NCBI GenBank assembly: GCA_002104905.1
Contig: MCFE01000056.1
Coordinates: 124,001-188,000 of the forward strand
Direction: 5' to 3'
Length of the DNA stretch: 64,000 bases
From: Basidiobolus meristosporus CBS 931.73
Lineage: Eukaryota; Fungi; Basidiobolomycota
Shown here: positions 36,371-60,770 of the stretch, piece by piece
How positions within the stretch are numbered: the stretch's first letter is position 1
How the letters are laid out: each line of letters starts with the position of its first letter
The notes under the pieces: model-generated
The model's database searches: none
What the model saw: only the letters and a program-made list of their open reading frames with translations
Told to the model about the DNA's origin: nothing
Program-made: the position numbers and the translations under genes

Positions 36371-36628
36371 GATTAAAGCTAACTATTTGCACCTTTGGAC
36401 CAAGTCAAAGATTAAGCAGAAAAGGAGGATTCGGCTGGACATCATCATTTACTATTTATTCTCCTCCCATGACCACCTATCCAATCTGACCATCCGCGTC
36501 GATCCCGAATTGCATGATCTTTTTTTCCTGAAAATTCCTCGGCCCAAACCCTACCCTGACCCTAACCCTAATCCTAATCCAGATGTCTGGCATGTGGTGT
36601 CAACTGATTTAATGGTTCAGAGAAAAGT

Positions 36629-40316: not shown

Positions 40317-40785
40317 GATTGGTGAAGAAAAAAAACTGATGGGTTGAAGGGTCGAAATCTCGCAACACTTTATACCTGTCTTCGCTAAGTCCACTCAAGC
40401 AACAATCCCTGATCTCCTGCGTAACTTTAAGCACGTTGATGCCAGACTTCCAATTACCCCAGGCCGCTGCTTACATTGATCCAAAACGGTCGTTGCCTTT
40501 TTTGGGAAGCCCTGATGATTGGGTCAAAATTACGATGTAATTTACCTTTCTTCCAACGTGGAAGGTGGAGTTGATCCGGGACCGAATCGGAGAGAACCTA
40601 ACCACGCGGCCTGGGGACCTTTACCAGACTGTCGACTTCGGCATTGGATGGAATGAAATTGACAACACCGTAAATTTTACAGATTGGTCGAGCGGTGGGA
40701 ATGTTCGGTGCTCTGGACCTAATGTTCGATACCGTCCGTGGCTTATATAAACCGGAGGGATGCCCATTTCTCTAACCACACAATC

Positions 40786-41265
40786 ATGAAGTTCTCCGCT
40801 TTTCAAATCCTCCTGCCCTTGACCGTTGTCGCCCAGCTGGCCTTGGCTTTCGATGCAAACACCCTCCTAGGAATGGTCAATCAAGAACGACAGAAGGTTG
40901 GCGTCCCTGTTCTATCGCTAGATGCTAGACTCATGGTGGCCGCTCAGAGACACAATGCCTACCAAGTCAGCATCCAAACCATGACCCATGACGAGCCCAA
41001 TAGATCTCTGGGAGATAGAGTAAGCGAGACTGGATACCAATGGAGTAATGTTGGGGAAAACGTGGCCGCCGGCTTTCCCGATGAAGCGTCCGTAATGAAT
41101 GCTTGGATGAACTCCCCAGAGCACCGTAGCAATATCCTGAGTCCCGCATTTACTCAAATCGGAGTCGCCTACAATCCCCAAGGCAGCTATTGGACTCAGG
41201 AATTCGCGAGACCAATGATCATGAGAAAGAGATCTCCAAAATTTGTTGGCAGAAACAATCACTAA
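40786..41265 (+). CDS. secreted CAP/SCP protein, bacterial-type subfamily
   Basis: Signal peptide, then LLGMVNQERQKVGV..L, AAQRH, GENVAAG, WMNSPEHRSNIL and IGVA..YWTQEF. Intronless. Confidence 0.9.
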   Translation: MKFSAFQILLPLTVVAQLALAFDANTLLGMVNQERQKVGVPVLSLDARLMVAAQRHNAYQVSIQTMTHDEPNRSLGDRVSETGYQWSNVGENVAAGFPDEASVMNAWMNSPEHRSNILSPAFTQIGVAYNPQGSYWTQEFARPMIMRKRSPKFVGRNNH

Positions 41266-41721: not shown

Positions 41722-41925
41722 CTAATAATCATCGTAGTCATCCCCACCACTGCCCCCTCCATACATTCTTCTTCCGTGGCTGTGGTCGCCATAATCATAA
41801 TCACCACCACCATGACCTACTCCCTTGTAGTCGGGATCGTAAGAACGCTCAAGGACTGTAGCATTGATGACCACCGCTGCGGAGACGACAAGGAATAGCT
41901 TTACAGCGGAGAATCTCCTGTTGAA
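41722..41925 (-). pseudogene. YD-repeat array copy 1 (short, start codon lost)
   Basis: The family start ATG AAA TAC TCC reads AGG AGA TTC TCC here. The rest is VLERSYDPDYKGVGHGGG...DDY*. Confidence 0.6.
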
Positions 41926-42266
41926 ATAATGATATAAAGCAGTGGACAGTCGGGTCATTTTATAGTGCGACTGAAGTATGTAATACAGTAGTATACTTCA
42001 TCTGTATTACGAGTTTGAAATCGAGTCATAAGTTCTGGTGCCCTCGCTCTGCAATGTTATAGTAGGTTCACGCTTTTGTTTCCTTGTAGTGCTCCTGTTA
42101 TACCAACTTAGTAGGACCTAAACTTTCTGTTGTGACTAAACACTGGCACACTAGTTGGCCTGATCTTGTTGCTGGTAGAGATTTCCAACATTTAAGAAAA
42201 TATATGGAGATATTCACTCGAATGTCGTTTATTGTGTACTTGGTATCAAGAGGGTATCCAAAATCT

Positions 42267-42650
42267 CTAATAGTCGTCATAGCCATCACCACGACCACGA
42301 CCACCACCACCATGCTTCCTCCTTCCATCGTAGTCATCATCGTAGTCGTTGCCGTCGTATCTCTTTCTCCCGTGGCCGCGGCCATCGTAGTCATCATCGT
42401 AGTCGTCACCATCATGTCTCCTTCCTCGGCCACGGCCATTGCCATCGTAATCATCATCGTAGTCGCCACCTCCGCCACCACCATATCTCCTTCTTCCGTG
42501 ACCATGGCCGTCGTAGTCATCGTCGTAGTCACCGCCACCACCGTGACCTACTCCCTTGTAGTCAGGATCGTAAGAGCGCTCAAGGACTGTGGCGTTGATA
42601 GCCAACGCAGCGGAGATGACAAGGAGAAGCTTTGCAACAGAGTATTTCAT
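42267..42650 (-). CDS. YD-repeat secreted protein, array copy 2
   Basis: MKYSVAKLLLVISAALAINA-TVLERSYDPDYKGVGHGGG followed by DYDDDYDG repeats. Confidence 0.85.
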   Translation of the reverse strand: MKYSVAKLLLVISAALAINATVLERSYDPDYKGVGHGGGGDYDDDYDGHGHGRRRYGGGGGGDYDDDYDGNGRGRGRRHDGDDYDDDYDGRGHGRKRYDGNDYDDDYDGRRKHGGGGRGRGDGYDDY

Positions 42651-43098
42651 CTTGAGATGGTGATTTGAAGGAGTGGACGGCTGGTGGTATTTATAAGAAG
42701 AAACCATGCGTGAGTATTAGCACGCTCTATAGGTTTATCAGTGTTGTGGGTTTGTATACGCACATTCAAATGCAGAGTGCATACACTGCAAGCTAGCCAT
42801 GGCTTACGACAGGATCATACCTTCACTCTGCAGCGTCAGTTTGTAGATCTTCAGGTGTAGGTGTGTCCCGTGCGCCGCGTAGTACTTGCAGCATCAATAT
42901 GTGCCAGCTACGAATCAATCACTATTTTGGTCAGATCTTGTTGTTTGCCCATTTCAGCAATAAGAAGGCAAGCAGTGGTTTCAGAAATTTAAGCTCACAT
43001 GACTGCTTAATGCCTGTAAGTATTTACAACTCTGGATGTGTAATGGCGTAGCATAGTTTATTGTGAATCTGGTATCAAAAAGAATGTATCTCAAGTCT

Positions 43099-43458
43099 CT
43101 AGTAGTCGTCATAGCCATCACCACGGCCACCACCACCACCATGCCTCTTTCTCCCATCGTAGTCATCATCGTAATCATTGCCATGCTTCTTTCTTCTTCC
43201 GTGACCGTGACCATCGTAGTCATCGCCGTAGTCATCGCCATCATATCTCCTTCCTCTTCACGCATGCCATCATAGTCTCATCGTAGTCATCGTCATACTT
43301 CTTCTTCCATGGCCATTACCATCGTAGTCATCGTCGTAGTCACCGCCACCATGACCTACCCCCTTGTAGTCAGGGTCGTAGGAGCGCTCAAGGACTGTAG
43401 CGTTGATAGCCAACGCAGCGGAGACGACAAGGAGAAGCTTTGCAATGGAGTATTTCAT
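43099..43458 (-). pseudogene. YD-repeat array copy 3 (frameshifted or mis-sequenced)
   Basis: Clustered small deletions at about 43255-43310 relative to its twin, copy 8. Confidence 0.6.
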
Positions 43459-43891
43459 GCTGAGATAGTGATTTGAAGGAGAGGCCGATCGGATTTATAT
43501 ACAGGGTGGTGAGAGTAAACACAAGCAGTAGCACGCTTCACTGGTGTTGTGGATTTGTATTGCACAATAAATCTTTGTGATCGAATCATGACATGTGGTA
43601 GTCACCTCCCACAGTCTGCAGTGTTAAGGCATCGAATATTATGATCCTCTATTTAATTCAGGCACCACGTGTTACTTATAGTCACGGCGGGATACTCTAA
43701 ATGACTACAACTTATTAATATTAGCTAAGTACACCATTGGCAAATTACCAGAATTTCCTGAACTTCGTATAGTCTATTGTGGTTCTTATGCTAGCATGAA
43801 GCTAATATCATTCAAGGAATCTTGCAACTTTGTTAATTGGTGACAATCGCTGTTTATTAGATATTTGGTATCAAGAGGGTATCTAGAATCT

Positions 43892-44239
43892 CTAGTAGTC
43901 ATCATAGCCATCACCACGGCCACCACTACCACCACCATACTTCTTTCTTCCATCGTAATCGTTGCCATGCTTCTTTCTTCTTCCGTGACCGTGGCCATCG
44001 TAGTCATCACCATCGTATCTCCTTCCTCTTCCACGGCCATTGCCATCGTAGTCGTCATCGTAGTCATCGTCATACTTCTTTCTTCTTCCATGGCCATTGC
44101 CGTCGTAGTCATCGTCATAGTCACCGCCACCATGACCTACCCCCTTGTATTCAGGTTCGTAGGAGCGCTCAAGAACTGTAGCATTGATAGCCAACGCAGC
44201 GGAGATGACAAGGAGAAGCTTTGCAATGGAGTATTTCAT
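43892..44239 (-). CDS. YD-repeat secreted protein, array copy 4
   Basis: Intact ORF with the family signal peptide and repeats. Confidence 0.85.
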   Translation of the reverse strand: MKYSIAKLLLVISAALAINATVLERSYEPEYKGVGHGGGDYDDDYDGNGHGRRKKYDDDYDDDYDGNGRGRGRRYDGDDYDGHGHGRRKKHGNDYDGRKKYGGGSGGRGDGYDDY

Positions 44240-44691
44240 GCTGAGATAGTGATTTGAAGGGGGGGGGGCTGATCAGATTTATATACAGGGTGGTGAGAGT
44301 AAGCATAAGCAGTAGCACAAGCAGTAGCATGCTTCATCAGTGTTGTGGATTTGTGTTGAGCCTTGCAATCGCTTCAAGCTGCAGTGCTAAGGCATGGGGA
44401 TTGTCGGTTTGATACATGTGCCACGTGTTAATTTTGGCCACAGTGGGGTGTCAACTTGTCACAATATGCTCTACCAGGCCACAATTTGGTCTGTTTTCTT
44501 TGCTAGATAACCACACTAACAGCAAATTACCAGATATTTCCTGAACTTCGTGTTTCAGCATTCGGTACTTGACCTCTTGTGGGTTCTTATGTTGGCATGA
44601 AGCTGATATTATTAGAGGAATCTTACAACCTTGTAAATGGAGAAAATTACACTTTATTAGTTATTTGATATCAAAAGGGTATCTGGAATCA

Positions 44692-44898
44692 TTAATAGTC
44701 GTCATAGTCGCCACCCCCACCTCCGCCATATCTCCTTGTTCCGTGATCATGGGCGTCGTATTCATCGTCGTAATCACCACCACCGCCGCCATGGCCTACT
44801 CCCTTGTAGTCAGGATCGTAGGAGCACTCAAGAACTGTGGTATTGATAGCCAACACTGCGGAGATGACAAGAAGGAGCTTTGCTACAGAGTATTTCAT
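44692..44898 (-). CDS. YD-repeat secreted protein, array copy 5 (short, 68 aa)
   Basis: Intact short ORF. VLERSY is changed to VLECSY. Confidence 0.7.
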   Translation of the reverse strand: MKYSVAKLLLVISAVLAINTTVLECSYDPDYKGVGHGGGGGDYDDEYDAHDHGTRRYGGGGGGDYDDY

Positions 44899-45209
44899 CT
44901 GGAGATAGTAAATTAGAGTGACAAACCTAGTGCATATATAGGGTGATGAGAGTGAGTATATGTGATATCATGCTCTACAGTTTATGTAAGATCTAACAGG
45001 CTACAATATGGCTCTAATCATTTGTTAATCAAGCACACCATTAGCAAATTACCAAAATTCCTGAACTTTGGTATTCAAAATATAACCTGTGGTGGTTTCT
45101 TATGCTGATAGTATTGGTGTGTAATTTTATCACTTAGTAAACTGGAGATAATCAGTGCTTATTGTGTATATGGTGTCAGGAGGATATCATGAAGGTATCA
45201 AGAGAGTAT

Positions 45210-45542
45210 CTAGAATTGCTGGTAGTCGTCATAACCATCACCACGGCCGCTACCACCATACTTCTTTCTTCCATCGTAGTCGTTGCCATGCTTCTTTCTT
45301 CCGTGACCGTGGCCATCGTAGTCATCGCCATCGTATCGCCTTCTTCCACGGCCATTGCCATCGTAGTCATCACCATACTTCTTTCTTCTTCCATGGCCAT
45401 TGCTGTCATAATCATCGTCATAGTCACCACCACCATGACCCATCCCCTTGTAGTCAGGATCGTAAGAGCGCTCAAGGACAATAGCATTGATAGTCAGTGC
45501 CGTGGAGATGACAAGGAGAAGCTTTGCGATGGAATATTTCAT
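45210..45542 (-). CDS. YD-repeat secreted protein, array copy 6
   Basis: Intact ORF. The family stop is read through to give GYDDYQQF*. Confidence 0.8.
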   Translation of the reverse strand: MKYSIAKLLLVISTALTINAIVLERSYDPDYKGMGHGGGDYDDDYDSNGHGRRKKYGDDYDGNGRGRRRYDGDDYDGHGHGRKKHGNDYDGRKKYGGSGRGDGYDDYQQF

Positions 45543-45923
45543 GTTGGAAGCGTGGCAGGAAACCATATCTTTTTGTAGGGTGATGGGAGTATATACATGC
45601 AGTAGTGCGCTGTACAGTTTCATCAGTACTGTAGCTTGGTATCGAGACATGATACCGATGTCTTTACTCCGTAATTTAACTCACAACTTTGTTTACTTGA
45701 GATGCTCCTGTTATATCAACTCTTCTGTTGCGGGTCCTAACCAATCACGGGCATACTAGTTGGCCTGATCTTGTTGCTGGTAGAGATTTCCAACATATAA
45801 GCCCTGGCGAGGTATTTTATGTAAATGAGGCATTTTATGCAATTTGGGGCCAGAAAATATATGGAGATATTCACTCGAATGTCGTTTATTGTGTACTTGG
45901 TATCAAGAGGGTATCCAAAATCT

Positions 45924-46313
45924 CTAATAGTCGTCATAGCCATCACCACGACCACGACCACCACCACCATGCTTCCTCCTTCCATCGTAGTCATCATCGT
46001 AGTCATCGCCGTCGTATCTCTTTCTTCCGTGGCCGCGGCCATCGTAGTCATCGTCGTAGTCGTCACCATCACGTCTCCTTCCACGGCCACGGCCACGGCC
46101 ATTGCCATCGTAATCATCATCGTAGTCGCCACCTCCGCCACCGCCATATCTGCTTCTTCCGTGACCATGGCCGTCGTAGTCATCGTCGTAGTCACCGCCA
46201 CCACCGTGACCTACTCCCTTGTAGTCAGGATCGTAAGAGCGCTCAAGGACTGTAGCGTTGATAGCCAACGCAGCGGAGATGACAAGGAGAAGCTTTGCAA
46301 CAGAGTATTTCAT
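45924..46313 (-). CDS. YD-repeat secreted protein, array copy 7 (twin of copy 2)
   Basis: Intact ORF with flanks nearly identical to copy 2. Confidence 0.85.
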   Translation of the reverse strand: MKYSVAKLLLVISAALAINATVLERSYDPDYKGVGHGGGGDYDDDYDGHGHGRSRYGGGGGGDYDDDYDGNGRGRGRGRRRDGDDYDDDYDGRGHGRKRYDGDDYDDDYDGRRKHGGGGRGRGDGYDDY

Positions 46314-46760
46314 CTTGAGATGGTGATTTGAAGGAGTGGACGGCTGGTGGTATTTATAAGAAGAAACCATGCGTGAGTATTAGCACCCTCTATAGGTTTA
46401 TCAGTGTTGTGGGTTTGTATACGCACATTCAAATGCAGAGTGCATACACTGCAAGCTAGTCATGGCTTACGACAGGATCTACCTTCACTCTGCAGCGTCA
46501 GTTTGTAGATCTTCAGGTGTAGGTGTGTCCCGTGCGCCGCGTAGTACTTGCAGCATCAATATGTGCCAGCTACGAATCAATCACTATTTTGGTCAGATCT
46601 TGTTGTTTGCCCATTTCAGCAATAAGAAGGCAAGCAGTGGTTTCAGAAATTTAAGCTCACATGGCTGCTTAATGCCTGTAAGTATTTACAACTCTGGATG
46701 TGTAATGGCGTAGCATAGTTTATTGTGTATCTGGTATCAAAAAGAATGTATCTCAAGTCT

Positions 46761-47129
46761 CTAGTAGTCGTCATAGCCATCACCACGGCCACCACCACCA
46801 CCATGCCTCTTTCTCCCATCGTAGTCATCATCGTAATCATTGCCATACTTCTTTCTTCTTCCGTGACCGTGGCCATCGTAGTCATCGTCGTAGTCATCGC
46901 CACCATATCTCCTTCCTCTTCCACGGCCATTGCCATCGTAGTCGTCATCGTAGTCATCGTCATACTTCTTTCTTCTTCCATGGCCATTACCGTCGTAGTC
47001 ATCGTCGTAGTCACTACCACCATGACCTACCCCCTTGTAGTCAGGATCATAAGAGCGCTCAAGGACTGTTGCGTTGATAGCCAATGCAGCGGAGATGACA
47101 AGGAGAAGCTTTGCAATGGAGTATTTCAT
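46761..47129 (-). CDS. YD-repeat secreted protein, array copy 8 (twin of copy 3)
   Basis: Intact 122 aa ORF. Confidence 0.85.
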   Translation of the reverse strand: MKYSIAKLLLVISAALAINATVLERSYDPDYKGVGHGGSDYDDDYDGNGHGRRKKYDDDYDDDYDGNGRGRGRRYGGDDYDDDYDGHGHGRRKKYGNDYDDDYDGRKRHGGGGGRGDGYDDY

Positions 47130-47652
47130 GCTGAGATAGTGATTTGAAGGAGAGACCGATCAGATTTATATATAGGGTGGTGAGAGTAAGCATATGTAGC
47201 AGCATGCATATAGCTTTCGACGCGTTCGCCTTGCATTCATACGATAAGACTTGGATTAAATGCTAAGCTGGGTAAATCAATATGATGCAGGCTTGTTTGT
47301 AGGTTCATCATCTTGTTAGCTTTCCCACAATTCGATATTTTGGGCGCAATGGTTGCTTATTGAGTGCTTGTGGGCTCTAATGATCGACATATCTATCACA
47401 CCGACCCTTGATCGTTGAAAAGGCACAGTGTCTGAAGTGTGAAGTAATTTTGCTTGTGGATGTCAAGCAATGGATATAATATCAGCCTTCTGCTCTCATA
47501 AATCCCGTAACTAAGCACTGTATTGAGCGGGCTATTTTTTCGAGGTTCAAGTAGCTGCAGCCTATCATATCTATAAATATATACACCCGTCAACGTATTG
47601 TAAGTAAACATCGTTTATTGTGTACTTGGTAACAAGAGGGTATCTAGAATTT

Positions 47653-48009
47653 CTAATAGTCGTCATAACCATCACCACGGCCACCACCATACTTCTTTCT
47701 TCCATGTCCATTGCCATCATAGTCATACTTCTTTCTTCTCCCGTGACCGTGACCATCGTAATCATCCTCGTAGTCATCTCCATCGTATCTCCTTCTTCCA
47801 CGACCATTACCGTCATAATCGTCATCGTAGTCGTTGCCATACTTCTTTCTTCTTCCATGACCATTGCCGTCATAATCATCGTCATAGTCACCGCCATCAC
47901 CATGACCTACCCCCTTGTAGTCAGGATCGTAAGAGCGCTCAAGGACTGAAGCATTGATGGCCAACGCAGCGGAGATGACAAGGAGAAGCTTTGCAATGGA
48001 GTATTTCAT
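47653..48009 (-). CDS. YD-repeat secreted protein, array copy 9
   Basis: Intact ORF from MKYSIAK. Confidence 0.85.
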   Translation of the reverse strand: MKYSIAKLLLVISAALAINASVLERSYDPDYKGVGHGDGGDYDDDYDGNGHGRRKKYGNDYDDDYDGNGRGRRRYDGDDYEDDYDGHGHGRRKKYDYDGNGHGRKKYGGGRGDGYDDY

Positions 48010-48315
48010 CTTGAGATGGTGATTTGAAGGAGTGAACGACTGGATGTATTTATAGGATAATGAGAGTAGACGCATGCAGTAGCACACTTTATCAGTGTTG
48101 TTGATTTGTATCGGTGGACTGCACAGCGCTAACAGTGATGTGTGATCTCATCTTATGAGGTAGTTGATTTATGCCAAAACTTGCGTTCAACATGTGATCG
48201 GATTTGATTAATATGTCAACTATGGTTACCGCTATTCCCATGTTTAATGGCTCAATCACGTAGAATCGATCAAAGGAGATAGTGTTGTGCCCTGAGCTGA
48301 AGTTTGGAGAGTGAA

Positions 48316-48388
48316 GGGGCGTTGGCCTAATGGATAAGGCATCAGACTTCGGATCTGGGGATTGTGGGTTCGAGTCCCATGCGCCTCG
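48316..48388 (+). tRNA. tRNA-Arg(UCG), copy 1
   Basis: 73-nt cloverleaf GGGGCGT...GCGCCTCG with anticodon loop CT-TCG-GA and T-loop TTCGAGT. Confidence 0.95.
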
Positions 48389-48625
48389 TTTTAGTATTTC
48401 AGCACCTCGATCCAGATTGGGTCAATCGCACTTTTTCTAACACTTCACCATGTTCGCCATTTCGGTGATTATCGGATGATTTGGATCAACTTCCAACACT
48501 TAAGCTGCCATTTTATGCTTTGCTAACGTCGCGTTGATAACCTTATAAATGGATACACCTCTCAACATACCATGTGTAAATATCAGTTTATTGAGTATCT
48601 GGTATCAAAAAGGTATCTCAAGTCT

Positions 48626-48991
48626 CTAGTAGTCTTCATAGCCATCACCACGACCACCACCACCATGCCTCTTTCTCCCATCGTAGTCATCATCGTAATC
48701 ATTGCCATGCTTCTTTCTTCTTCCATGACCGTGGCCATCGTAATCGTCGTCGTAGTCATCACCATTATATCTCCTTCTTCTTCCACCGCCATTGCCATCG
48801 TAGTCGTCGTCATAGTCATCACCATATTTCTTTCCTCTTCCATGGCCATTGCCGTCATAATCATCATCGTAGTCACCACCGCCATGACCTACCCCCTTGT
48901 AGTCAGGGTCGTAGGAACGCTCAAGGACTGTAGCATTGATAGCCAACGCAGCAGAGATGACAAGGAGAAGCTTTGCAACGGAGTATTTCAT
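48626..48991 (-). CDS. YD-repeat secreted protein, array copy 10
   Basis: Intact ORF from MKYSVAK. Confidence 0.85.
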   Translation of the reverse strand: MKYSVAKLLLVISAALAINATVLERSYDPDYKGVGHGGGDYDDDYDGNGHGRGKKYGDDYDDDYDGNGGGRRRRYNGDDYDDDYDGHGHGRRKKHGNDYDDDYDGRKRHGGGGRGDGYEDY

Positions 48992-49549
48992 CTTGAGATA
49001 GTGATTTGAAGGAGTAGCTGACCGAATGTATTTATAGGATAATGAGGGTAGACGCATGCAATAGCACACATTATCAGTTTTGTCGATTTGTATCGGTGAG
49101 CTGCACGGCACTAACATTGATGTGGGATCCCTTCTTATGAAGGAGTTGATTTATGCCAATACTTGCGTTTAACATGTGTTCAGATTCGAAGGATACGTCG
49201 AATAGGGTTACTACTATATCTCCAGATTTTGGTCCAACACGGTATTGGATTTTAAGTAGGTTCATAGAATTGCTAAAGAAGGGTAGTCTTCTACCCTGAG
49301 CTGGACTTTGAAGTGTTATGAAATCCAGGCCAGTTCCCGTCCTTCTGTTTGGTGTAACAAGGTCTGTCCTTTATTTTAGCGTAGGATCTACTTTTTATAC
49401 ATTTCTCGATCATTTGCATACAACTTGTCTTACTTTAGCCCATCAGTCTTTGATCATTTTTGATGATTTTTGGTGTTGACGCATCTCTATATGCGACAAC
49501 TTGCTGCCTGTTCTGGTCGGGATTCAGACTTTCATAACAGAAGAGTGAG

Positions 49550-49622
49550 GGGGCGTTGGCCTAATGGATAAGGCATCAGACTTCGGATCTGGGGATTGTG
49601 GGTTCGAGTCCCATGCGCCTCG
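49550..49622 (+). tRNA. tRNA-Arg(UCG), copy 2
   Basis: Identical 73-nt cloverleaf. Confidence 0.95.
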
Positions 49623-50284
49623 TATTTTGTGCTTCATCGTTAGATGTCTCGAACTAGAGCCATAATAGCATTTAGCTCTGCAAATATTTTCACAGTTTAG
49701 ACATTTAGCAACTGCTAAAGCAATTGCAACAAAATTATAGACATCACATACTGCTACTCTGTGCTCGTAGCAGGATGAGGCCAGAGGAACCCACCACTGG
49801 TTTTGGGCAATTTAATTGCAATCTCACCAGTAAATCCATTTTTCCGTTGTCGTTAACATACTTCTTCCTTTCCAGATTGTTCGAAGAGTAATAAAATCCT
49901 CGAAATGCCCTAGCCCATGCCGATGTGTCCGTACAAAGTAGAACCGGAGGATTTCTATACAGCACATCGGTGTTATGATTCGCATTTGATAGAGTAGCAT
50001 AGTGTTTTGATGTCTGCAGTTGTATTATATATGAAACTAGCAGTAATCATCATCAGTGTCCTTGAAATGCTCGTGCTCATGTCCTTTCATTTACTTCGTA
50101 TTAGCGTGACTATTAAAAACAAGTGAATTACCTAGTGAACAAGAAAAAATATAGCAGAGCACCTGCATTTGTAGGAAATATAATATATTCTCTGTTTAGG
50201 AAGTAATAATTCTTTGTGAAAGTACTGTTTATTAAGTTGTATAACGAGGTTAAGTCTTTGGTATCCAGAGGGTATCTTAAGTCT

Positions 50285-50665
50285 CTAATAGTCGTCGTAG
50301 TCATCACCATGGCCACGGCCACCACTATACTTCCTTCTTCCATGGCCATTGCCATCACCATCATAGTCATTATCGTAATCATTGCCATACTTCTTTCTTT
50401 TTCCGTGACCGTGGCCATCGTAGTCATCTCCATCATATCTCCTTCTTCCACGGCCATTACCATCGTAATCATCGTCGTAGTTGCCACCTCCACCGCCGCC
50501 ATATCTCCTTCCGTGACCATTGCCGTCATAATCATCGTCATAGTCACCGCCACCACCATGACCTACCCCCTTGTAGTCAGGATCGTAAGAGCGCTCAAGG
50601 ACTGAAGCATTGATGGCCAACGCAGCAGAGATGACAAGGAGAAGCTTTGCAATGGAGTATTTCAT
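50285..50665 (-). CDS. YD-repeat secreted protein, array copy 11
   Basis: Intact ORF. The upstream flank is nearly identical to that of copy 9. Confidence 0.85.
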   Translation of the reverse strand: MKYSIAKLLLVISAALAINASVLERSYDPDYKGVGHGGGGDYDDDYDGNGHGRRYGGGGGGNYDDDYDGNGRGRRRYDGDDYDGHGHGKRKKYGNDYDNDYDGDGNGHGRRKYSGGRGHGDDYDDY

Positions 50666-50971
50666 CTTGAGATGGTGATTTGAAGGCGTGAACGACTGGA
50701 TGCATTTATAGGATAATGAGAGTAGACGCATGTAGTAGCACACTTTATCAGTGTTGTTGATTTGTATCGGTGGACTGCACAGCGCTAACAGTGATGTGTG
50801 ATCTCATCTTATGAGGTAGTTGATTTATGCCAAAACTTGCGTTCAACATGTGATCGGATTTGATTGATATGTCAACTATGGTTACCACTATTTCCATGCT
50901 TAATGGCTTAATCACGTAGAATCGATCAAAGGAGATAGTGTTGTGCCCTGAGCTGAAGTTTGGAGAGTGAA

Positions 50972-51044
50972 GGGGCGTTGGCCTAATGGATAAGGCATCA
51001 GACTTCGGATCTGGGGATTGTGGGTTCGAGTCCCATGCGCCTCG
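50972..51044 (+). tRNA. tRNA-Arg(UCG), copy 3
   Basis: Identical 73-nt cloverleaf. Confidence 0.95.
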
Positions 51045-51281
51045 TTTTAGTATTTCAGCACCTCGATCCAGATTGGGTCAATCGCACTTTTTCTAACACT
51101 TCACCATGTTCGCCATTTCGGTGATTATCGGATGATTTGGATCAACTTCCAACATTTAAGCTGCCATTTTATGCTTTGCTAACGTTGCGTTGATAGCCTT
51201 GTAAATAGATAAACCTCTCAACATACCATGTGTAAATATCAGTTTATTGAGTATCTGGTATCAAAAAGGTATCTCAAGTCT

Positions 51282-51662
51282 CTAATAATCGTCATAACCA
51301 TCACCTCGGCCGCCGCCACCACGACCACCATACTTCTTTCTTCCATTACCATCGTAGTCATCATCGTAATCATTGTCATACTTCTTTCTCTTTCCGTGAC
51401 CGTGGCCATCGTAGTCATCGTCGTAGTCATTGCCGTCATATCTACTTCCTCTTCCGCGACCATTGCCATCGTAGTCGTCGTCATAGTCATCGCCGTACTT
51501 CTTTCTTCTTCCGTGACCGTGGCCATCATAGTCATCATCATAGTCACCGCCACCATGACCTACCCCCTTGTAGTCAGGATCGTAAGAGCGCTCAAGAACT
51601 GTAGCATTGATAGCTAGCGCAGCGGAGATGACAAGGAGAAGCTTTGCAATGGAGTATTTCAT
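51282..51662 (-). CDS. YD-repeat secreted protein, array copy 12
   Basis: Intact ORF from MKYSIAK. Confidence 0.85.
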   Translation of the reverse strand: MKYSIAKLLLVISAALAINATVLERSYDPDYKGVGHGGGDYDDDYDGHGHGRRKKYGDDYDDDYDGNGRGRGSRYDGNDYDDDYDGHGHGKRKKYDNDYDDDYDGNGRKKYGGRGGGGRGDGYDDY

Positions 51663-51984
51663 GCTGAGATAGTGATTTGAAGGAGGGCCGATCAGATTTA
51701 TATACAGGGTGGTGAGAGTAAGCATAAGCAGTAGCACAAGCAGTAGCATGCTTCATCAGTGTTGGCGATTTGTATTGATGATTTAAGCTGCACAGCACTA
51801 ACATTGATGTATGCTCCCATCTTGTGATAGAATCAACTTGTGTCAACATTTGCGTTCAACATGTGTTCGGATGTGATTGATATGCCAACTATGGCTACCG
51901 CTGTTTCCATACTTAATGGCTCAGCCATATAGAATTGATAAAAAGAGAGAGCAGTTTACCCTGAGCTACACATTTGAGAGTGAA

Positions 51985-52057
51985 GGGGCGTTGGCCTAAT
52001 GGATAAGGCATCAGACTTCGGATCTGGGGATTGTGGGTTCGAGTCCCATGCGCCTCG
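51985..52057 (+). tRNA. tRNA-Arg(UCG), copy 4
   Basis: Identical 73-nt cloverleaf. Confidence 0.95.
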
Positions 52058-52291
52058 TTTTTGTAATTTCAACTCCATAATCGAAATGGAGTCAGTAACA
52101 CTGTTTGAATTATTCGCCAAGGTCACCATTTCGAAGTAAATCAAACAATTTGGATATTTCAATTTCCAACTTGAAAGTTTTAGCGTTACATTTTGATACC
52201 CTTGTAGGTAGCCACAATTCTGAACATGTCATGTGTAAATGTTGGTTTATTGTGTATTTGGTATTTGGTACCAAGAAGGTATCTCAAGTCT

Positions 52292-52678
52292 CTAATAATC
52301 GTCATAACCATCACCTCGGCCGCCGCCGCCACCGCCGTACTTCTTTCTTCCATGACCATTACCATCATAATCGTCGTCATAATCATTGTCATACTTCTTT
52401 CTTCTTCCGTGACCATGACCATCGTAGTCATCGTCGTAGTCATCCCCGTCATATCTCCTTCTTCTTCCACGGCCATTACCATCATAATCATCATCGTAGT
52501 CGTTACCATACTTCTTTCTTCCTCCATGGCCATTACCGTCATAATCATCGTCATAGTCACCACCACCACCGTGACCTACCCCCTTGTAGTCAGGATCGTA
52601 AGAGCGCTCAAGGACTGAAGCATTGATAGCCAACGCAGCGGAGATGACAAGGAGAAGCTTTGCAACGGAGTATTTCAT
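52292..52678 (-). CDS. YD-repeat secreted protein, array copy 13
   Basis: Intact ORF from MKYSVAK. Confidence 0.85.
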   Translation of the reverse strand: MKYSVAKLLLVISAALAINASVLERSYDPDYKGVGHGGGGDYDDDYDGNGHGGRKKYGNDYDDDYDGNGRGRRRRYDGDDYDDDYDGHGHGRRKKYDNDYDDDYDGNGHGRKKYGGGGGGRGDGYDDY

Positions 52679-53667
52679 GTTGATATAATGATTGGAAATA
52701 ATCAGAAGATCAAGGCATTTATACATATTACAATGCAAGAATATGCAGAAGCACGCCCATCAGTGTTTGCTGATCACACGTACAGTGTTGAGGAGAGATG
52801 TCCGTAGCATTCATGGCTTTAATCTAGTGCGCATTTAGCAGTTTTATAATGCGATATGTGTTGTTGGTTAAGCACACTCAGTACCAAACTACCTGTGCTG
52901 ACAACTCAGCTTGTAAGCTGTACATCAATTAGATGCTTCCCAACTTGTGCTATACTTGCAGTCATGGCTCTTTCTGCAGGTGACTTGAGTTTGATATGTC
53001 CAGATGCATATTATGTTTTGAAATCAGATTTTCTTGAGTGCCAATGACACGCCTGTGGTAATGCTGTACGTAGGTTTTCTGGCCAACGAGAAGCAGTAGT
53101 CAGTCATATAGTATTGTGGCATATTTCTAAATGGAATTCTGAGTCAGTTTACTTCAGGCCACTACACTGTGCAATATTCCTAGCAACGGCCAGACATTTC
53201 TTTGTAGCATATCAACCAGCAACAGTAGTAGCAGTAGTAGTTAAAATCATCGTTGGTGAAGCGTTTCAGCAGATTGAAATAATAGGAAGCAAAGTATAAC
53301 GTGCTTTATGTTTGCTTGCTTAGACTCACGGTGAAATGCCACTCTCAATTTGCGAGATAAATACATTCAAGCACCTGAATACGGGGTAACCCAAGGAGAA
53401 TTTTAGTGGCGAAATTTGTCAGGTATTTAGTTCGGATATATTCGGATATATTGTATTAGGTAACCACTCCAAATAGATAATCCACAATTTCCTTTTATGA
53501 CCCACTGTTCTTCGCGGAGGTTACTAATGGGGAAATGTTTTATTGATATGAGGAACGTTCTCTAGTTGGAATGACAAGATATTTTATATGTTCTAGATGT
53601 ATGGCAAGCGTTTCTATTTAAATAGGCCTGTTAGCATTTTCTATCACTGGAAACGAATCTAAGCAAA

Positions 53668-55599
53668 ATGAGACATGTAATTATTGGAGGTGTAGCCGGA
53701 GGAGCAACAGCAGCCGCCCGATTGAGAAGAGTGGATGAGACGGCTGAGATCATTTTATTGGAGAAGGGTCCCTATATCTCTTACGCCAACTGTGGTTTGC
53801 CGTACTATATCGGCGGAGTCATTGCTAAACGCGAAAAACTGCTGCTGCAGACGCCAAAGTCGTTTGGTACGCGTTTCCGTATTGACGTCAGAATAGAGAG
53901 CAAAGTAATTGCCATCCATCCAGAGGATAAAAGCCTGACCATTCGTAGGGCAAATGGAGAAGAATACAAAGAAACTTACGACAAGCTGCTACTATCACCA
54001 GGTGCCAATCCCGTGAAGCCGCCATTGGAGGGTATCAATTCCGAAGGCATATTCACCCTGCGCAACGTAGAAGATACCGACCATATCAAAGCGTACATTG
54101 CTGAGAAACAGGTAAAGCGTGCCGTAGTAGTAGGTGCCGGTTTTATCGGGCTGGAGATGGCGGAGAACCTGCACCATGCCGGGGTGGCTGTTTCCGTAGT
54201 CGAAATGGGCAACCAGGTTATGGCTCCTATCGACTTCTCTATGGCAGCGTATATCCATCAACACTTGACACAAAAGGGCACATCTTTATATCTTGAAGAA
54301 GGTGTTACGCACTTCCAGCGTACAGACAGCGGCATTACTGTTTTCCTGAAAAGTGGCAGGACCATTCCTGCCGATATGGTATTACTCTCTATCGGCGTGC
54401 GTCCAGCAACAGCATTGGCGCAACAGGCCGGCTTGAAGTTGGGAGAGACGGGTGGCATCTGGGTAGATAAACACTTGGAAACCTCCCAAAAGGATATCTA
54501 TGCAGTGGGTGATGCTATTGAATATCCTCATCCGTTGACCGGGAAACCGTGGCTCAACTATCTTGCCAATCCGGCTAATCGCCAAGGTCGTATCGTAGCC
54601 GATAACATGGTATTTGGCAACACGGTTTCTTATGAAGGGGCTATCGGTACTTCTATCGCCAAAGTATTCGATATGACTGTGGCTTCTACAGGACTGGCAG
54701 CCAAGCGTTTGAAGCAGTTGGGAATGGAGTATCAGAGTTCAGTTACCCACTCCTCTTCCCATGCAGGCTATTATCCGGACGCTTTGCCCTTGACGCTGAA
54801 GCTAACCTTTCACCCTAAGACTGGTAAGCTTTACGGTGCGCAATGTGTGGGCTACGAAGGAGTGGACAAGCGTATCGACCAAATAGCTGGAGTCATCAAA
54901 CATGGCGGGACGGTATATGACCTGACGGAAACTGAGCACACCTATGCACCCCCTTTCTCATCTGCCAAAGATCCTATAGCCATTGGTGGATATGTTGCCT
55001 CCAATATAATCAGCGGGGCTATGCCGGCTATTTCCTGGCGCGAACTCGTTGATGAGAAAGACCAAGTGATGATGTTTGATACCCGTACTGCCGAAGAATA
55101 CTCATTTGGCTCCATTCCGGGGGCTGTCAATGTTCCCTTGAATGAATTGCGTGAGCACATTGCTGAAATCCCGATGGATAAACCAGTTGTTCTATTCTGT
55201 GCCATAGGACTGCGCGGCTATCTAGCTCAGCGCATCTTGATGGGACGCGGTTATCGCAATGTTCGCAACCTAATCGGCGGCTATAAAACTTATTCCACCA
55301 GCGTAGCTCCTATTGCAAAGCCTTCTACCGAGGTTCCTTCACCACAAGAGGCTGGTGAGGCGACAAAGATAAACGTATGCGGGTTACAGTGTCCCGGGCC
55401 TATCATGCAGGTAATAGAAGCGATGAACAGCATTGCGGTTGGCAAACGTGTTACAGTCACGGCAACTGATGCAGGTTTGGCTCGTGACGCCTCTGCCTGG
55501 TGCGACACTACAGGCAACAAATTGATATCAAAGCATGAAGAAAAAGGTCGCTACACAGTTGTTCTAGAAAAAGGAGAACCCGCCACTAAACAGAATTGA
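53668..55599 (+). CDS. bacterial-type CoA-disulfide/persulfide reductase fused to rhodanese and TusA(SirA) domains
   Basis: Motifs IIGGVAGG (FAD), SYANCGLPYY (redox Cys), VVGAGFIGLE (NAD(P)H), YAVGD and YAPPFSSAKDP. Rhodanese loop FCAIGLRG and TusA motif CGLQCPGP. Intronless 643 aa. Confidence 0.93.
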   Translation: MRHVIIGGVAGGATAAARLRRVDETAEIILLEKGPYISYANCGLPYYIGGVIAKREKLLLQTPKSFGTRFRIDVRIESKVIAIHPEDKSLTIRRANGEEYKETYDKLLLSPGANPVKPPLEGINSEGIFTLRNVEDTDHIKAYIAEKQVKRAVVVGAGFIGLEMAENLHHAGVAVSVVEMGNQVMAPIDFSMAAYIHQHLTQKGTSLYLEEGVTHFQRTDSGITVFLKSGRTIPADMVLLSIGVRPATALAQQAGLKLGETGGIWVDKHLETSQKDIYAVGDAIEYPHPLTGKPWLNYLANPANRQGRIVADNMVFGNTVSYEGAIGTSIAKVFDMTVASTGLAAKRLKQLGMEYQSSVTHSSSHAGYYPDALPLTLKLTFHPKTGKLYGAQCVGYEGVDKRIDQIAGVIKHGGTVYDLTETEHTYAPPFSSAKDPIAIGGYVASNIISGAMPAISWRELVDEKDQVMMFDTRTAEEYSFGSIPGAVNVPLNELREHIAEIPMDKPVVLFCAIGLRGYLAQRILMGRGYRNVRNLIGGYKTYSTSVAPIAKPSTEVPSPQEAGEATKINVCGLQCPGPIMQVIEAMNSIAVGKRVTVTATDAGLARDASAWCDTTGNKLISKHEEKGRYTVVLEKGEPATKQN

Positions 55600-59039: not shown

Positions 59040-60770
59040 GGTTGAGGGGGGAGGAATGTCACCAAGTGGTGGAGTCTTTATTTATTTATGACAAGTATCC
59101 AAAGAAGCCAACTTAATCTGAAGTTATTCCTAGAAAGCTAGGTCTGAGAGTTGAGAAGCTGAGTGGTACTGTATTACCTAGTTAGCTAGGTCTGAGAGAG
59201 GTTTCCTGCAAAGTCAGGCCTGAGAAGTAAGAATCTTAGTATATCTGAGGTAAGTTGTACTGGTTTGTGGTAGCTGCATTGTGGCCAGAATGTCCAGTTG
59301 AGTGAGGGAACTGAGGGGAACTTCTGGGCAATCACCAGTCAAATTCACTAGGCAAATCTGACCAATTAGAGCTAGGGGGAAACAGTCACCAACAGGTAAA
59401 ATCTTTATTTCAGCTGGAACAAAGAAGACAGTGCTACTGTCATAGCTTTTATACAAGAGTGTCTAGCTGAGTGGAACTTGTAGGTAAGGTAACAAGGAGA
59501 GATGATAGCTCTCAGTGCTGAAGATACTGTTCAGTGGGAAGGGGGGTAGCAAGAGGGGCAAGAATGATTTGTGAACAACATGGATAAAAGTTAAGGGGGA
59601 TGATAATCACCAAAAGGTGAAATCTTAGGGTTAGGGGATCCTATGATAAATAATTTGGGATAGTGGGAGACAGTCACCAACAGACAAAATCTTTATTTCA
59701 TTGAAAGAAAGAAGCCAGTGCTACTGTTGAAGCTTTGATACAAGAGTGTGTAGCTGAGGGGAGTTTGTAGGTAAGTTAATAAGAAGTGGTGATAGTTCTT
59801 CAGTGCTCAAGACACTGTTCAGTGGAAGGGGGGAGCAAGAAGGGTGAGAATGATTTGTGAACAACATTAATGAGGAGAATATGATAACAATTAATATTTG
59901 TCATAAAGGGAGTGTGCTGCTTCAGATACTGCTGCCAAAGATCTGTCAAGTACTTCAGATAGGCCAGTTTGGGTTTTTCTGACTGCAGAATATAATGAGC
60001 AAACTTCTTGACTTCAGGATCTCCAAGTATAGTTCTCCAGCAGGAGCCAGGTGTAGCATGGTGTGTTCTCTTACAGGCATTGATTAGTTGGTTGCTGCAG
60101 TGGTGAATTCTGAGATATAATGTGGTTCTAAGGTAGAGAAGTCTAATCATATAGGGCATAAACCCAAAAGCACCAAGAATAGCATGTCTGTAGGGGCATA
60201 CAGGCAGACAAGGCACCAAGGAGGTAATACACCAGACTGCAAGCTTGTCAAGCTTAGTGCAGTTGCTAGCAGTAAGAGAGAGAAGTGGTAAGCCAAATTC
60301 CAGGACAGGAAAGACAAGCTGTTTGAGAAGAAGAAGGCAGTGGGAGCTGAAGTTGTAGGAGCAACAGCCAGTAGCTTGTGGAGAGCCTGTCATGCCAGGA
60401 TAATTCTCTTCTTCAGGTGTGCTCCAGAGCCTAGTCCAGTAGGAAGGAAAGGAAAGCCAAGATATGCAGCAGAAACCTGAGCAGGTAGAGTGCAGTTTTC
60501 TAAGTTGATGGGACTACTAAAAGGTACTGTCTTTGCAATGAAAAGCTGGAGATTATTCTTCTGCAAATGCTAGTGAATGGTCTGGGAGTCTTGTAGCTTG
60601 AACCAAAGCAGGTTTCTGTCAGCTGAATCAAAGGCTTTAGTAATATCAAACAGAACAGAGGGATACTTGCACTGGAGAGAGTGATCTTGGCTAAGTACGA
60701 CTGCATATTCCAAGGAGAGGCTAGGAACAAAGCCAAACTGTGCCGGGTGAAACTTACATCACTCAATAGT
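59040..60770 (-). mobile_element. non-LTR (LINE-like) retroelement 3' remnants
   Basis: ORF 59800-60393 LLKQLVFPVLEFGLPL resembles the post-RT L..P.LEY region of LINEs. CpG-depleted, with a duplicated 3' region. Confidence 0.5.

Follow-up and report, generated by a model that had tools for sequence, protein, structure and literature searches.

What does a tandem array of short, Tyr- and Asp-rich reading frames encode at positions 41722-52678 of a 64,000-nt window (the whole stretch of DNA analyzed) from contig MCFE01000056.1 of Basidiobolus meristosporus CBS 931.73, and what would become of its products? A prior inspection of the letters of this DNA, hereafter the sequence-only reading, had described 13 tandem copies of small secreted proteins with dibasic processing sites and proposed a new peptide or adhesive system. 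The best explanation for the array is a lineage-restricted family of the Kex2-processed repeat protein (KEP) type that was amplified by tandem duplication and unequal crossing-over. Our favored reading, to which we assign a probability of roughly 0.5, is that the encoded proteins are KEP-type precursors that would be cut into short polyanionic peptides.

Open reading frame (ORF) listing and a motif scan placed 13 intronless ORFs in tandem on the minus strand of this interval, each of which contains the motif VLE[RC]SY[DE]P[DE]YKG[VM]GHG and, after it, blocks of the DYDDDYDG type with basic clusters, closing in ...YDDY. The N-terminus common to the copies has the form MKYS[IV]AKLLLVISAALAINA-TVLERSYDPDYKGVGHGGG and leads into DYDDDYDG[NH]G[HR]G-type blocks and a C-terminus ending in ...GDGYDDY. 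The count of 13 in the sequence-only reading stands, but only 10 copies are intact and full-length (110-129 aa); one of the others is short, one has no canonical ATG and one contains in-frame stops. Copy 1 (52292-52678; 128 aa, four basic clusters) has a TATA box at 52716-52723 and an AATAAA signal at 52246-52251, and its protein has identical counterparts in two further contigs, MCFE01001205 and MCFE01001009. The other intact copies are copy 2 (51282-51662; 126 aa), in which one spacer has degraded to GSR, copy 3 (50285-50665; 126 aa), whose tail is without RGD, copies 4 (48626-48991; 121 aa) and 5 (47653-48009; 118 aa), copy 6 (46761-47129; 122 aa), which is without annotation in the public record, copy 7 (45924-46313; 129 aa), in which one spacer has degraded to RSR, copies 10 (43892-44239; 115 aa) and 12 (42267-42650; 127 aa), and copy 8 (45210-45542; 110 aa), the most diverged, where a shifted stop adds QQF, the TATA box is weak and AATAAG replaces AATAAA. 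Copy 9 (44692-44898) is a short form of 68 aa with a single RR. Copy 11 (43099-43458) is disrupted by two in-frame stops, the defect consisting of five small deletions (9 nt in sum) after codon 53 with the frame restored downstream, and its homologue in contig MCFE01001009 of the same assembly is intact. Copy 13 (41722-41958) is a short, divergent end copy that has AGG at the shared ATG position and whose 78-aa ORF begins at an upstream ATG beside a TATA box.

DNA identity between paralogs ranges from 75 to 88%. A codon alignment of 11 copies gave a Nei-Gojobori nonsynonymous divergence (dN) of 0.07 compared with a synonymous divergence (dS) of 0.66, a ratio of ~0.10 that is similar along the chain (0.10 in the head, 0.10 in the repeats). 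Pairwise differences at codon positions 1, 2 and 3 were 0.079, 0.048 and 0.266, respectively, and third positions account for 88 of the 135 segregating sites. Alignment of the flanks of the copies revealed a TATA box (TATAAATA or TATATAAA) 40-46 nt 5' of the ATG in 11 of the 13. The copies also keep a short 5' untranslated region (UTR; CTTCAAATCAC.ATCTCA) and, in 12 of 13 cases, an AATAAA 23-52 nt past the stop, at the end of a conserved stretch of ~40 nt that follows the TAG. Because of the low dN/dS, the third-position excess and the conserved TATA box, 5' UTR and AATAAA, we conclude that the minus-strand frame is, as judged from sequence, the coding one, and that the copies are separate, compact units without introns. 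An origin by chance or as an antisense artefact is ruled out by the dN/dS of ~0.10, the third-position excess and the TATA/AATAAA conservation, and long ORFs elsewhere in the array, whether on the plus strand or in the remaining minus-strand frames, were set aside as by-products of GAY/TAY/GGN codon repeats.

GenBank annotates two or three of the 13 copies (ORY02534, ORY02532 and a 66-aa model of copy 13), and its models of array copies look wrong. ORY02534.1 fuses copies 8 and 9 via an invented intron, copy 8 being its first half, and ORY02532.1 splices over the damaged stretch of copy 11. On another contig, ORX91597 begins from an ATG further upstream, so that the signal peptide would be buried.

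The signal peptide, judged by heuristic criteria together with the AlphaFold helix, features Lys at positions 2 and 7, a hydrophobic core whose Kyte-Doolittle maximum over 10 residues is 2.4-2.9, and ALA or INA cleavage motifs. AlphaFold, supplied with a 14-sequence family alignment, predicted a helix at residues 5-21 only, with a predicted local distance difference test (pLDDT) score of ~40-46 elsewhere. The chain of ~100 residues after the signal peptide comprises ~27% Gly, 26% Asp, 15% Tyr, 11% Arg, 6% Lys and 5% His, carries a net charge of -3 to -11, and contains no Cys, almost no Ser or Thr and no hydrophobic residues past the head (after mature residue 15). A Pfam scan of two copies returned no family or domain. 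No EF-hand or other Ca-binding domain was matched in Pfam; DxDxDG is matched by the DDDYDG strings, but Arg or Lys occupies position 12, where a complete 12-residue loop calls for an acidic residue. The chain, which ends in ...GDGYDDY, also has no glycosylphosphatidylinositol (GPI) signal and no Ser/Thr-rich, PIR or Cys-rich wall module.

Paralogs share a position-specific block order, in which a conserved head of 31-33 residues is followed by RRKK, a block ending in GNGRG(RG), RR(RR), a block ending in GHGHG, RRKK or RKR, a further block, and RKK, RKR or RRK; the tail after the last basic cluster has the form [YH]GGGG..RGDGYDDY. Each product contains three to four acidic Tyr/Asp/Gly/His blocks, within which length changes occur in four-residue DYDD steps that fit the 12-nt period reported by Tandem Repeats Finder. 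Predicted fragments are nearly all unique, with 47 distinct sequences among 53. The 12 readable copies contain 40 basic clusters: RRKK (10), RKK (7), RR (6), RRR (5), RKR (4), RRK (3), RRRR (2), KRKK (2) and KK (1). Gly precedes 39 of these and Tyr or His follows 38, and a canonical KR or RR lies inside 32. Charges are strongly segregated along the chain, as evidenced by a kappa of 0.40-0.47 compared with 0.16 for shuffled sequences (z 4.8-7) at a charged fraction of 0.41-0.46. We note that an RGD tripeptide (...GGRGDGYDDY) is present in the tail of nine of the 10 intact copies, for example at 52292-52340; in animals RGD is a motif for integrin binding, and animal guts are where this fungus lives, but the tripeptide could be a chance product of a chain rich in Gly, Arg and Asp.

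KEPs have been defined by a signal peptide and at least three repeats between KR, RR or KK (Le Marquer 2019, Umemura 2020), the Umemura rule taking repeats of 8-100 residues between KR, KK, RK or RR (PMC7329392). The 10 intact copies each hold 4-5 segments of at least eight residues between dibasic sites and pass this rule, together with the signal-peptide criterion as judged heuristically, whereas copies 9 and 13 hold two segments each, below the repeat criterion, copy 11 is broken, and copy 13 is without a canonical start. The combination of signal peptide, repeats and dibasic separators that the sequence-only reading had recognized is therefore upheld in 10 copies by the published formal criteria. 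Its description of a new system was overstated: the KEP class is already known, the array family is a further member of it, and a published survey of 1461 fungal assemblies found the most KEPs, 43, in CBS 931.73 (PMC7329392). These include type S-3 (#158), a Basidiobolus-only type of seven genes from one strain with high Tyr, multiple Asp and no DUF3328 gene nearby (PMC7329392).

Like the array products, the S-3 KEPs have a signal peptide, at least three repeats of at least eight residues between dibasic sites and a Tyr/Asp-rich composition, and they come from the same strain. The two differ in count: the paper lists seven annotated genes, and in the DNA of four contigs there are at least 39 copies, the majority without annotation. 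The array family is very probably in the Umemura catalogue already, because at least four annotated members would pass that pipeline. Comparison with KEP catalogues, which the sequence-only reading had suggested, thus turned up the 43 KEPs of the strain with their Tyr/Asp-rich S-3 type, and we regard S-3 as the somewhat probable candidate identity of the family (GenBank accessions ORX75516, ORX75519, ORY02534, ORY02532, ORX91597). Basidiobolus is not among the fungi included in the Le Marquer 2019 supplements, and a literature search for the peptide motifs returned nothing relevant.

In the putative mechanism, each intronless copy would be transcribed independently of the others, by means of a TATA box, a short conserved 5' UTR and an AATAAA of its own, and the product would enter the endoplasmic reticulum via the classical signal peptide MKYS[IV]AKLLLVISAALAINA. 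The predicted mature chain of ~100 residues, built of Gly, Asp, Tyr, Arg, Lys and His and free of Cys and hydrophobic residues, would be disordered. A kexin probably cuts this chain in the late Golgi after the [KR]R dipeptides of its three to four basic clusters, following which, by analogy with known KEP processing, a Kex1-type carboxypeptidase would trim the basic residues. The expected products are one conserved head peptide of 31-33 residues (TVLERSYDPDYKGVGHGGGDYDDDYDGNGHG), three to four acidic peptides of 7-21 residues (e.g. YDGDDYDDDYDGHGHG) and a tail peptide, often with RGD. Where a disordered secretory protein exposes a dibasic site, cleavage is the expected default, and cutting would be expected here because the secretory chain is predicted to be disordered with exposed KR/RR sites and fits the formal KEP class. 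For other fungal KEPs the path of signal peptidase, KEX2 cleavage at dibasic sites, KEX1 trimming and secretion has been shown experimentally (PMC9769878). As the weakest step of this scheme, the peptides may act in bulk as secreted polyanions, binding Ca2+ or other metal cations or coating surfaces; a bulk role rather than one precise ligand is suggested because the peptides vary between copies, and in length through DYDD slippage, while keeping their Tyr, Asp, His and Gly positions.

Several observations weigh against processing into cation-binding or surface-coating peptides. Eight of the 40 clusters (RKK, KK) have no canonical [KR]R and hence no Arg at P1, 23 end in Lys, which is poor for classical Kex2, and the clusters, at 3-4 residues, are longer than a cleavage site requires. 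The strong charge segregation (kappa 0.40-0.47) would suit an uncut polyampholyte equally well. Kexins are present in related Entomophthoromycotina. In a survey of 154 subtilisin-like proteases from six members of that group the two enzymes classed as S8B kexins came only from Conidiobolus incongruus, with no S8B listed for B. meristosporus (PMC6169396) in spite of the record count of predicted KEPs in this strain. Exact-protein look-up returned genomic contigs only and no transcripts. Finally, cation binding is something we infer solely from composition and peptide variability, with no EF-hand or other Pfam domain behind the idea.

The processing proposed for the array has a parallel in Ustilago maydis Rep1, a secreted repeat protein from which Kex2 releases numerous peptides, alike but not identical, whose bulk action is at the cell surface. 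The Rep1 peptides, which are amphipathic, assemble into amyloid-like fibrils, whereas those of the array would be strongly acidic and without hydrophobic residues, and there is no sequence similarity between the two. Laccaria bicolor MiSSP8 and the yeast alpha-factor precursor (MF-alpha1) likewise join a signal peptide to short dibasic-flanked cores, and the MiSSP8 repeats combine Asp, an aromatic residue and RR (DWRR motif). Both are single genes with identical short cores and, in alpha-factor, Ste13 spacers; the array, in contrast, has no XA/XP spacers, variable cores, basic clusters of 3-4 residues and genes in tandem. A further likeness is to Asp-rich anionic or mineral-binding proteins, with which the array products would share poly-Asp richness and DxDxDG-like strings but no homology.

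The main rival to processing, which the sequence-only reading had also raised and which we consider unlikely, is that the chain remains uncut and serves as a charge-block structural or adhesive material. Blocks with charges of ~-6 and ~+4, Tyr/Arg contacts and Gly spacers would then permit self-association into a coacervate, and the material, crosslinked through Tyr, might form part of a spore wall, coat hyphae or serve as a conidial adhesive. Such a material would accommodate the segregated charges (kappa 0.40-0.47 at a charged fraction of 0.41-0.46, z 4.8-7) and a composition of ~27% Gly, 26% Asp, 15% Tyr and 17% Arg plus Lys with no hydrophobic core, as well as basic clusters that exceed the length of a cleavage site and often terminate in Lys, and copies that tolerate variation in sequence and length. 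However, KR or RR occurs in 32 of the 40 clusters of a disordered chain that passes the Golgi, and staying uncut would need some form of protection. The chain offers no GPI signal, no Ser/Thr-rich or Cys-rich anchoring region and no known wall-protein domain, its net charge of -3 to -11 is unbalanced, and neither tyrosinase nor peroxidase was among the Pfam families listed for the flanks.

We consider it improbable that the copies are precursors of modified peptides, whether peptides made by ribosomes and modified after translation (RiPPs) of the ustiloxin/dikaritin type or ones that bear sulfated, hydroxylated or cross-linked Tyr, with the tailoring enzymes encoded elsewhere in the genome. 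The KEP-type architecture with invariant Tyr resembles that of UstA-type precursors, which carry Tyr in every core, and the Asp-Tyr contexts resemble tyrosine-sulfation sites of animals and plants. The array cores, however, are long and variable, where dikaritins typically have short, identical ones. When the flanks (26-41.7 kb and 52.7-64 kb, or 15 kb and 11 kb) were scanned with Pfam, through 82 open frames of at least 75 aa, the 25 of 40 families listed included no DUF3328 (UstYa) or tyrosinase, the partners that define the ustiloxin type, and no P450, methyltransferase, sulfotransferase or other obvious tailoring enzyme, in agreement with the observation of the sequence-only reading that the window contains no DUF3328 or tyrosinase tailoring gene. 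The same holds more widely for DUF3328, which is found near none of 185 Zoopagomycota KEPs (PMC7329392).

Two further explanations appear very improbable. A decaying or silent subtelomeric repeat with ORFs that are no longer expressed would account for three degenerate copies of 13, the lack of transcript contigs in the exact-protein look-up and the annotation of just two or three copies in GenBank, but it conflicts with a dN/dS of ~0.10 at a dS of ~0.66, with the excess of third-position changes, with the TATA and AATAAA elements kept in nearly all copies and with the retention of the same reading frames in parallel arrays on three other contigs. Gly-extended, neuropeptide-style precursors, in which a secreted PHM/DBH/MOXD copper monooxygenase would amidate the C-terminal Gly or oxidize Tyr, are suggested by the Gly before 39 of 40 basic clusters, as at the Gly-dibasic amidation sites of animal neuropeptide precursors, but there is no homology to those proteins, Gly makes up 27% of the array chain and may simply belong to the repeat, and we know of no fungal peptide-amidating enzyme; if true, this reading would mean a fungal system of amidated or oxidized peptides.

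Versions of the array also occur on three more contigs of this assembly, all with tRNA-Arg genes, and a motif scan counted 39 copies across the four. MCFE01001205 is 99.5% identical to the window array over 8.9 kb and differs in structure beyond, MCFE01001009 is colinear at 95-98.6% identity with an extra copy pair and without the copy-12 type, and MCFE01000314 is 84-92% identical. Array versions therefore differ in structure within one strain. MCFE01001009 also contains a chimeric copy (L001:5630-6001) that joins the front of copy 6 to the back of copy 7 (45924-47129 in the window), a footprint of unequal crossing-over between these two copies.

As to a wider range, 5.8 billion proteins were searched by a word-based method, using either the whole protein or its N-terminal 42 residues, and yielded B. 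meristosporus only, and a profile hidden Markov model search of 1.84 billion representatives matched B. meristosporus only, plus one insignificant repeat protein. A JGI metagenome scan with the family alignment gave 600 pattern matches, none of which was confirmed. The homology searches that the sequence-only reading had proposed accordingly bear out its failure to recognize a known family, with none in Pfam and none in large protein libraries outside B. meristosporus. Candidate relatives from the ESM Atlas were rejected, as the best feature score (0.76) was at noise level and the structure matches rest on a disordered model. So far, then, the family is restricted to B. meristosporus within the protein libraries and metagenomes searched, a scope that does not extend to unannotated copies in other Basidiobolus.

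Interspersed among the precursor genes in the right half of the array are four tRNA-Arg(TCG) genes, 100% identical to one another and all on the plus strand. Each is 300-560 nt upstream of one of copies 2-5 and divergent from it, an arrangement shared by the three other array contigs. They lie at 48316-48388 (divergent from copy 5, ~300 nt upstream of it), 49550-49622 (upstream of copy 4), 50972-51044 (upstream of copy 3) and 51985-52057 (upstream of copy 2). We rejected the idea that these genes supply the Arg-rich products, given that CGA accounts for four of 118 Arg codons and CGG for none; the family uses mainly AGA, CGT, AGG and CGC. The tRNA-Arg genes seem to have been amplified as passengers of the repeat unit.

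The flanks hold housekeeping genes, a CAP-domain gene, a reductase, a copia-type fragment and a protoglobin (Pfam). The CAP-domain gene (40738-41265), which encodes a secreted CAP/PR-1-type protein of the cysteine-rich secretory protein family, adjoins the left end of the array. An intact gene for a 643-aa CoA-disulfide reductase-rhodanese-TusA protein (53668-55599) lies 1 kb from the array, and its product shares 83-85% identity with Bacteroides proteins and 91% with a single protein from a metagenome. The reductase gene is also present in B. ranarum (83% DNA identity), there without an adjoining array; the contig that carries this ortholog has no family copy and no tRNA-Arg within 8.3 kb, which does not imply genome-wide absence. 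In a search for sister species by way of this bacterial-type reductase, the closest non-self match was a Bacteroides-like metagenome contig. Short interstitial TTAGGG repeats occur at 36554-36577 and 59625-59636, with four matches compared with 0.2 expected.

Basidiobolus is an unusual, early-diverging fungus of frog and lizard guts that is also able to infect humans. B. meristosporus has the largest KEP repertoire among surveyed fungi (PMC7329392), yet none of its KEPs has been studied. The array adds a family that selection has kept in dozens of copies over several arrays and that is mostly missing from public annotation. As the KEP class was already known, the finding is chiefly of value for improved annotation and as a clear, inexpensive target for experiments. 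If expressed, the family would either flood the surroundings of the fungus with Tyr/Asp peptides of polyanionic character or build up a charge-block material on its spores, and either outcome would bear on how the fungus handles gut cations, microbes or surfaces.

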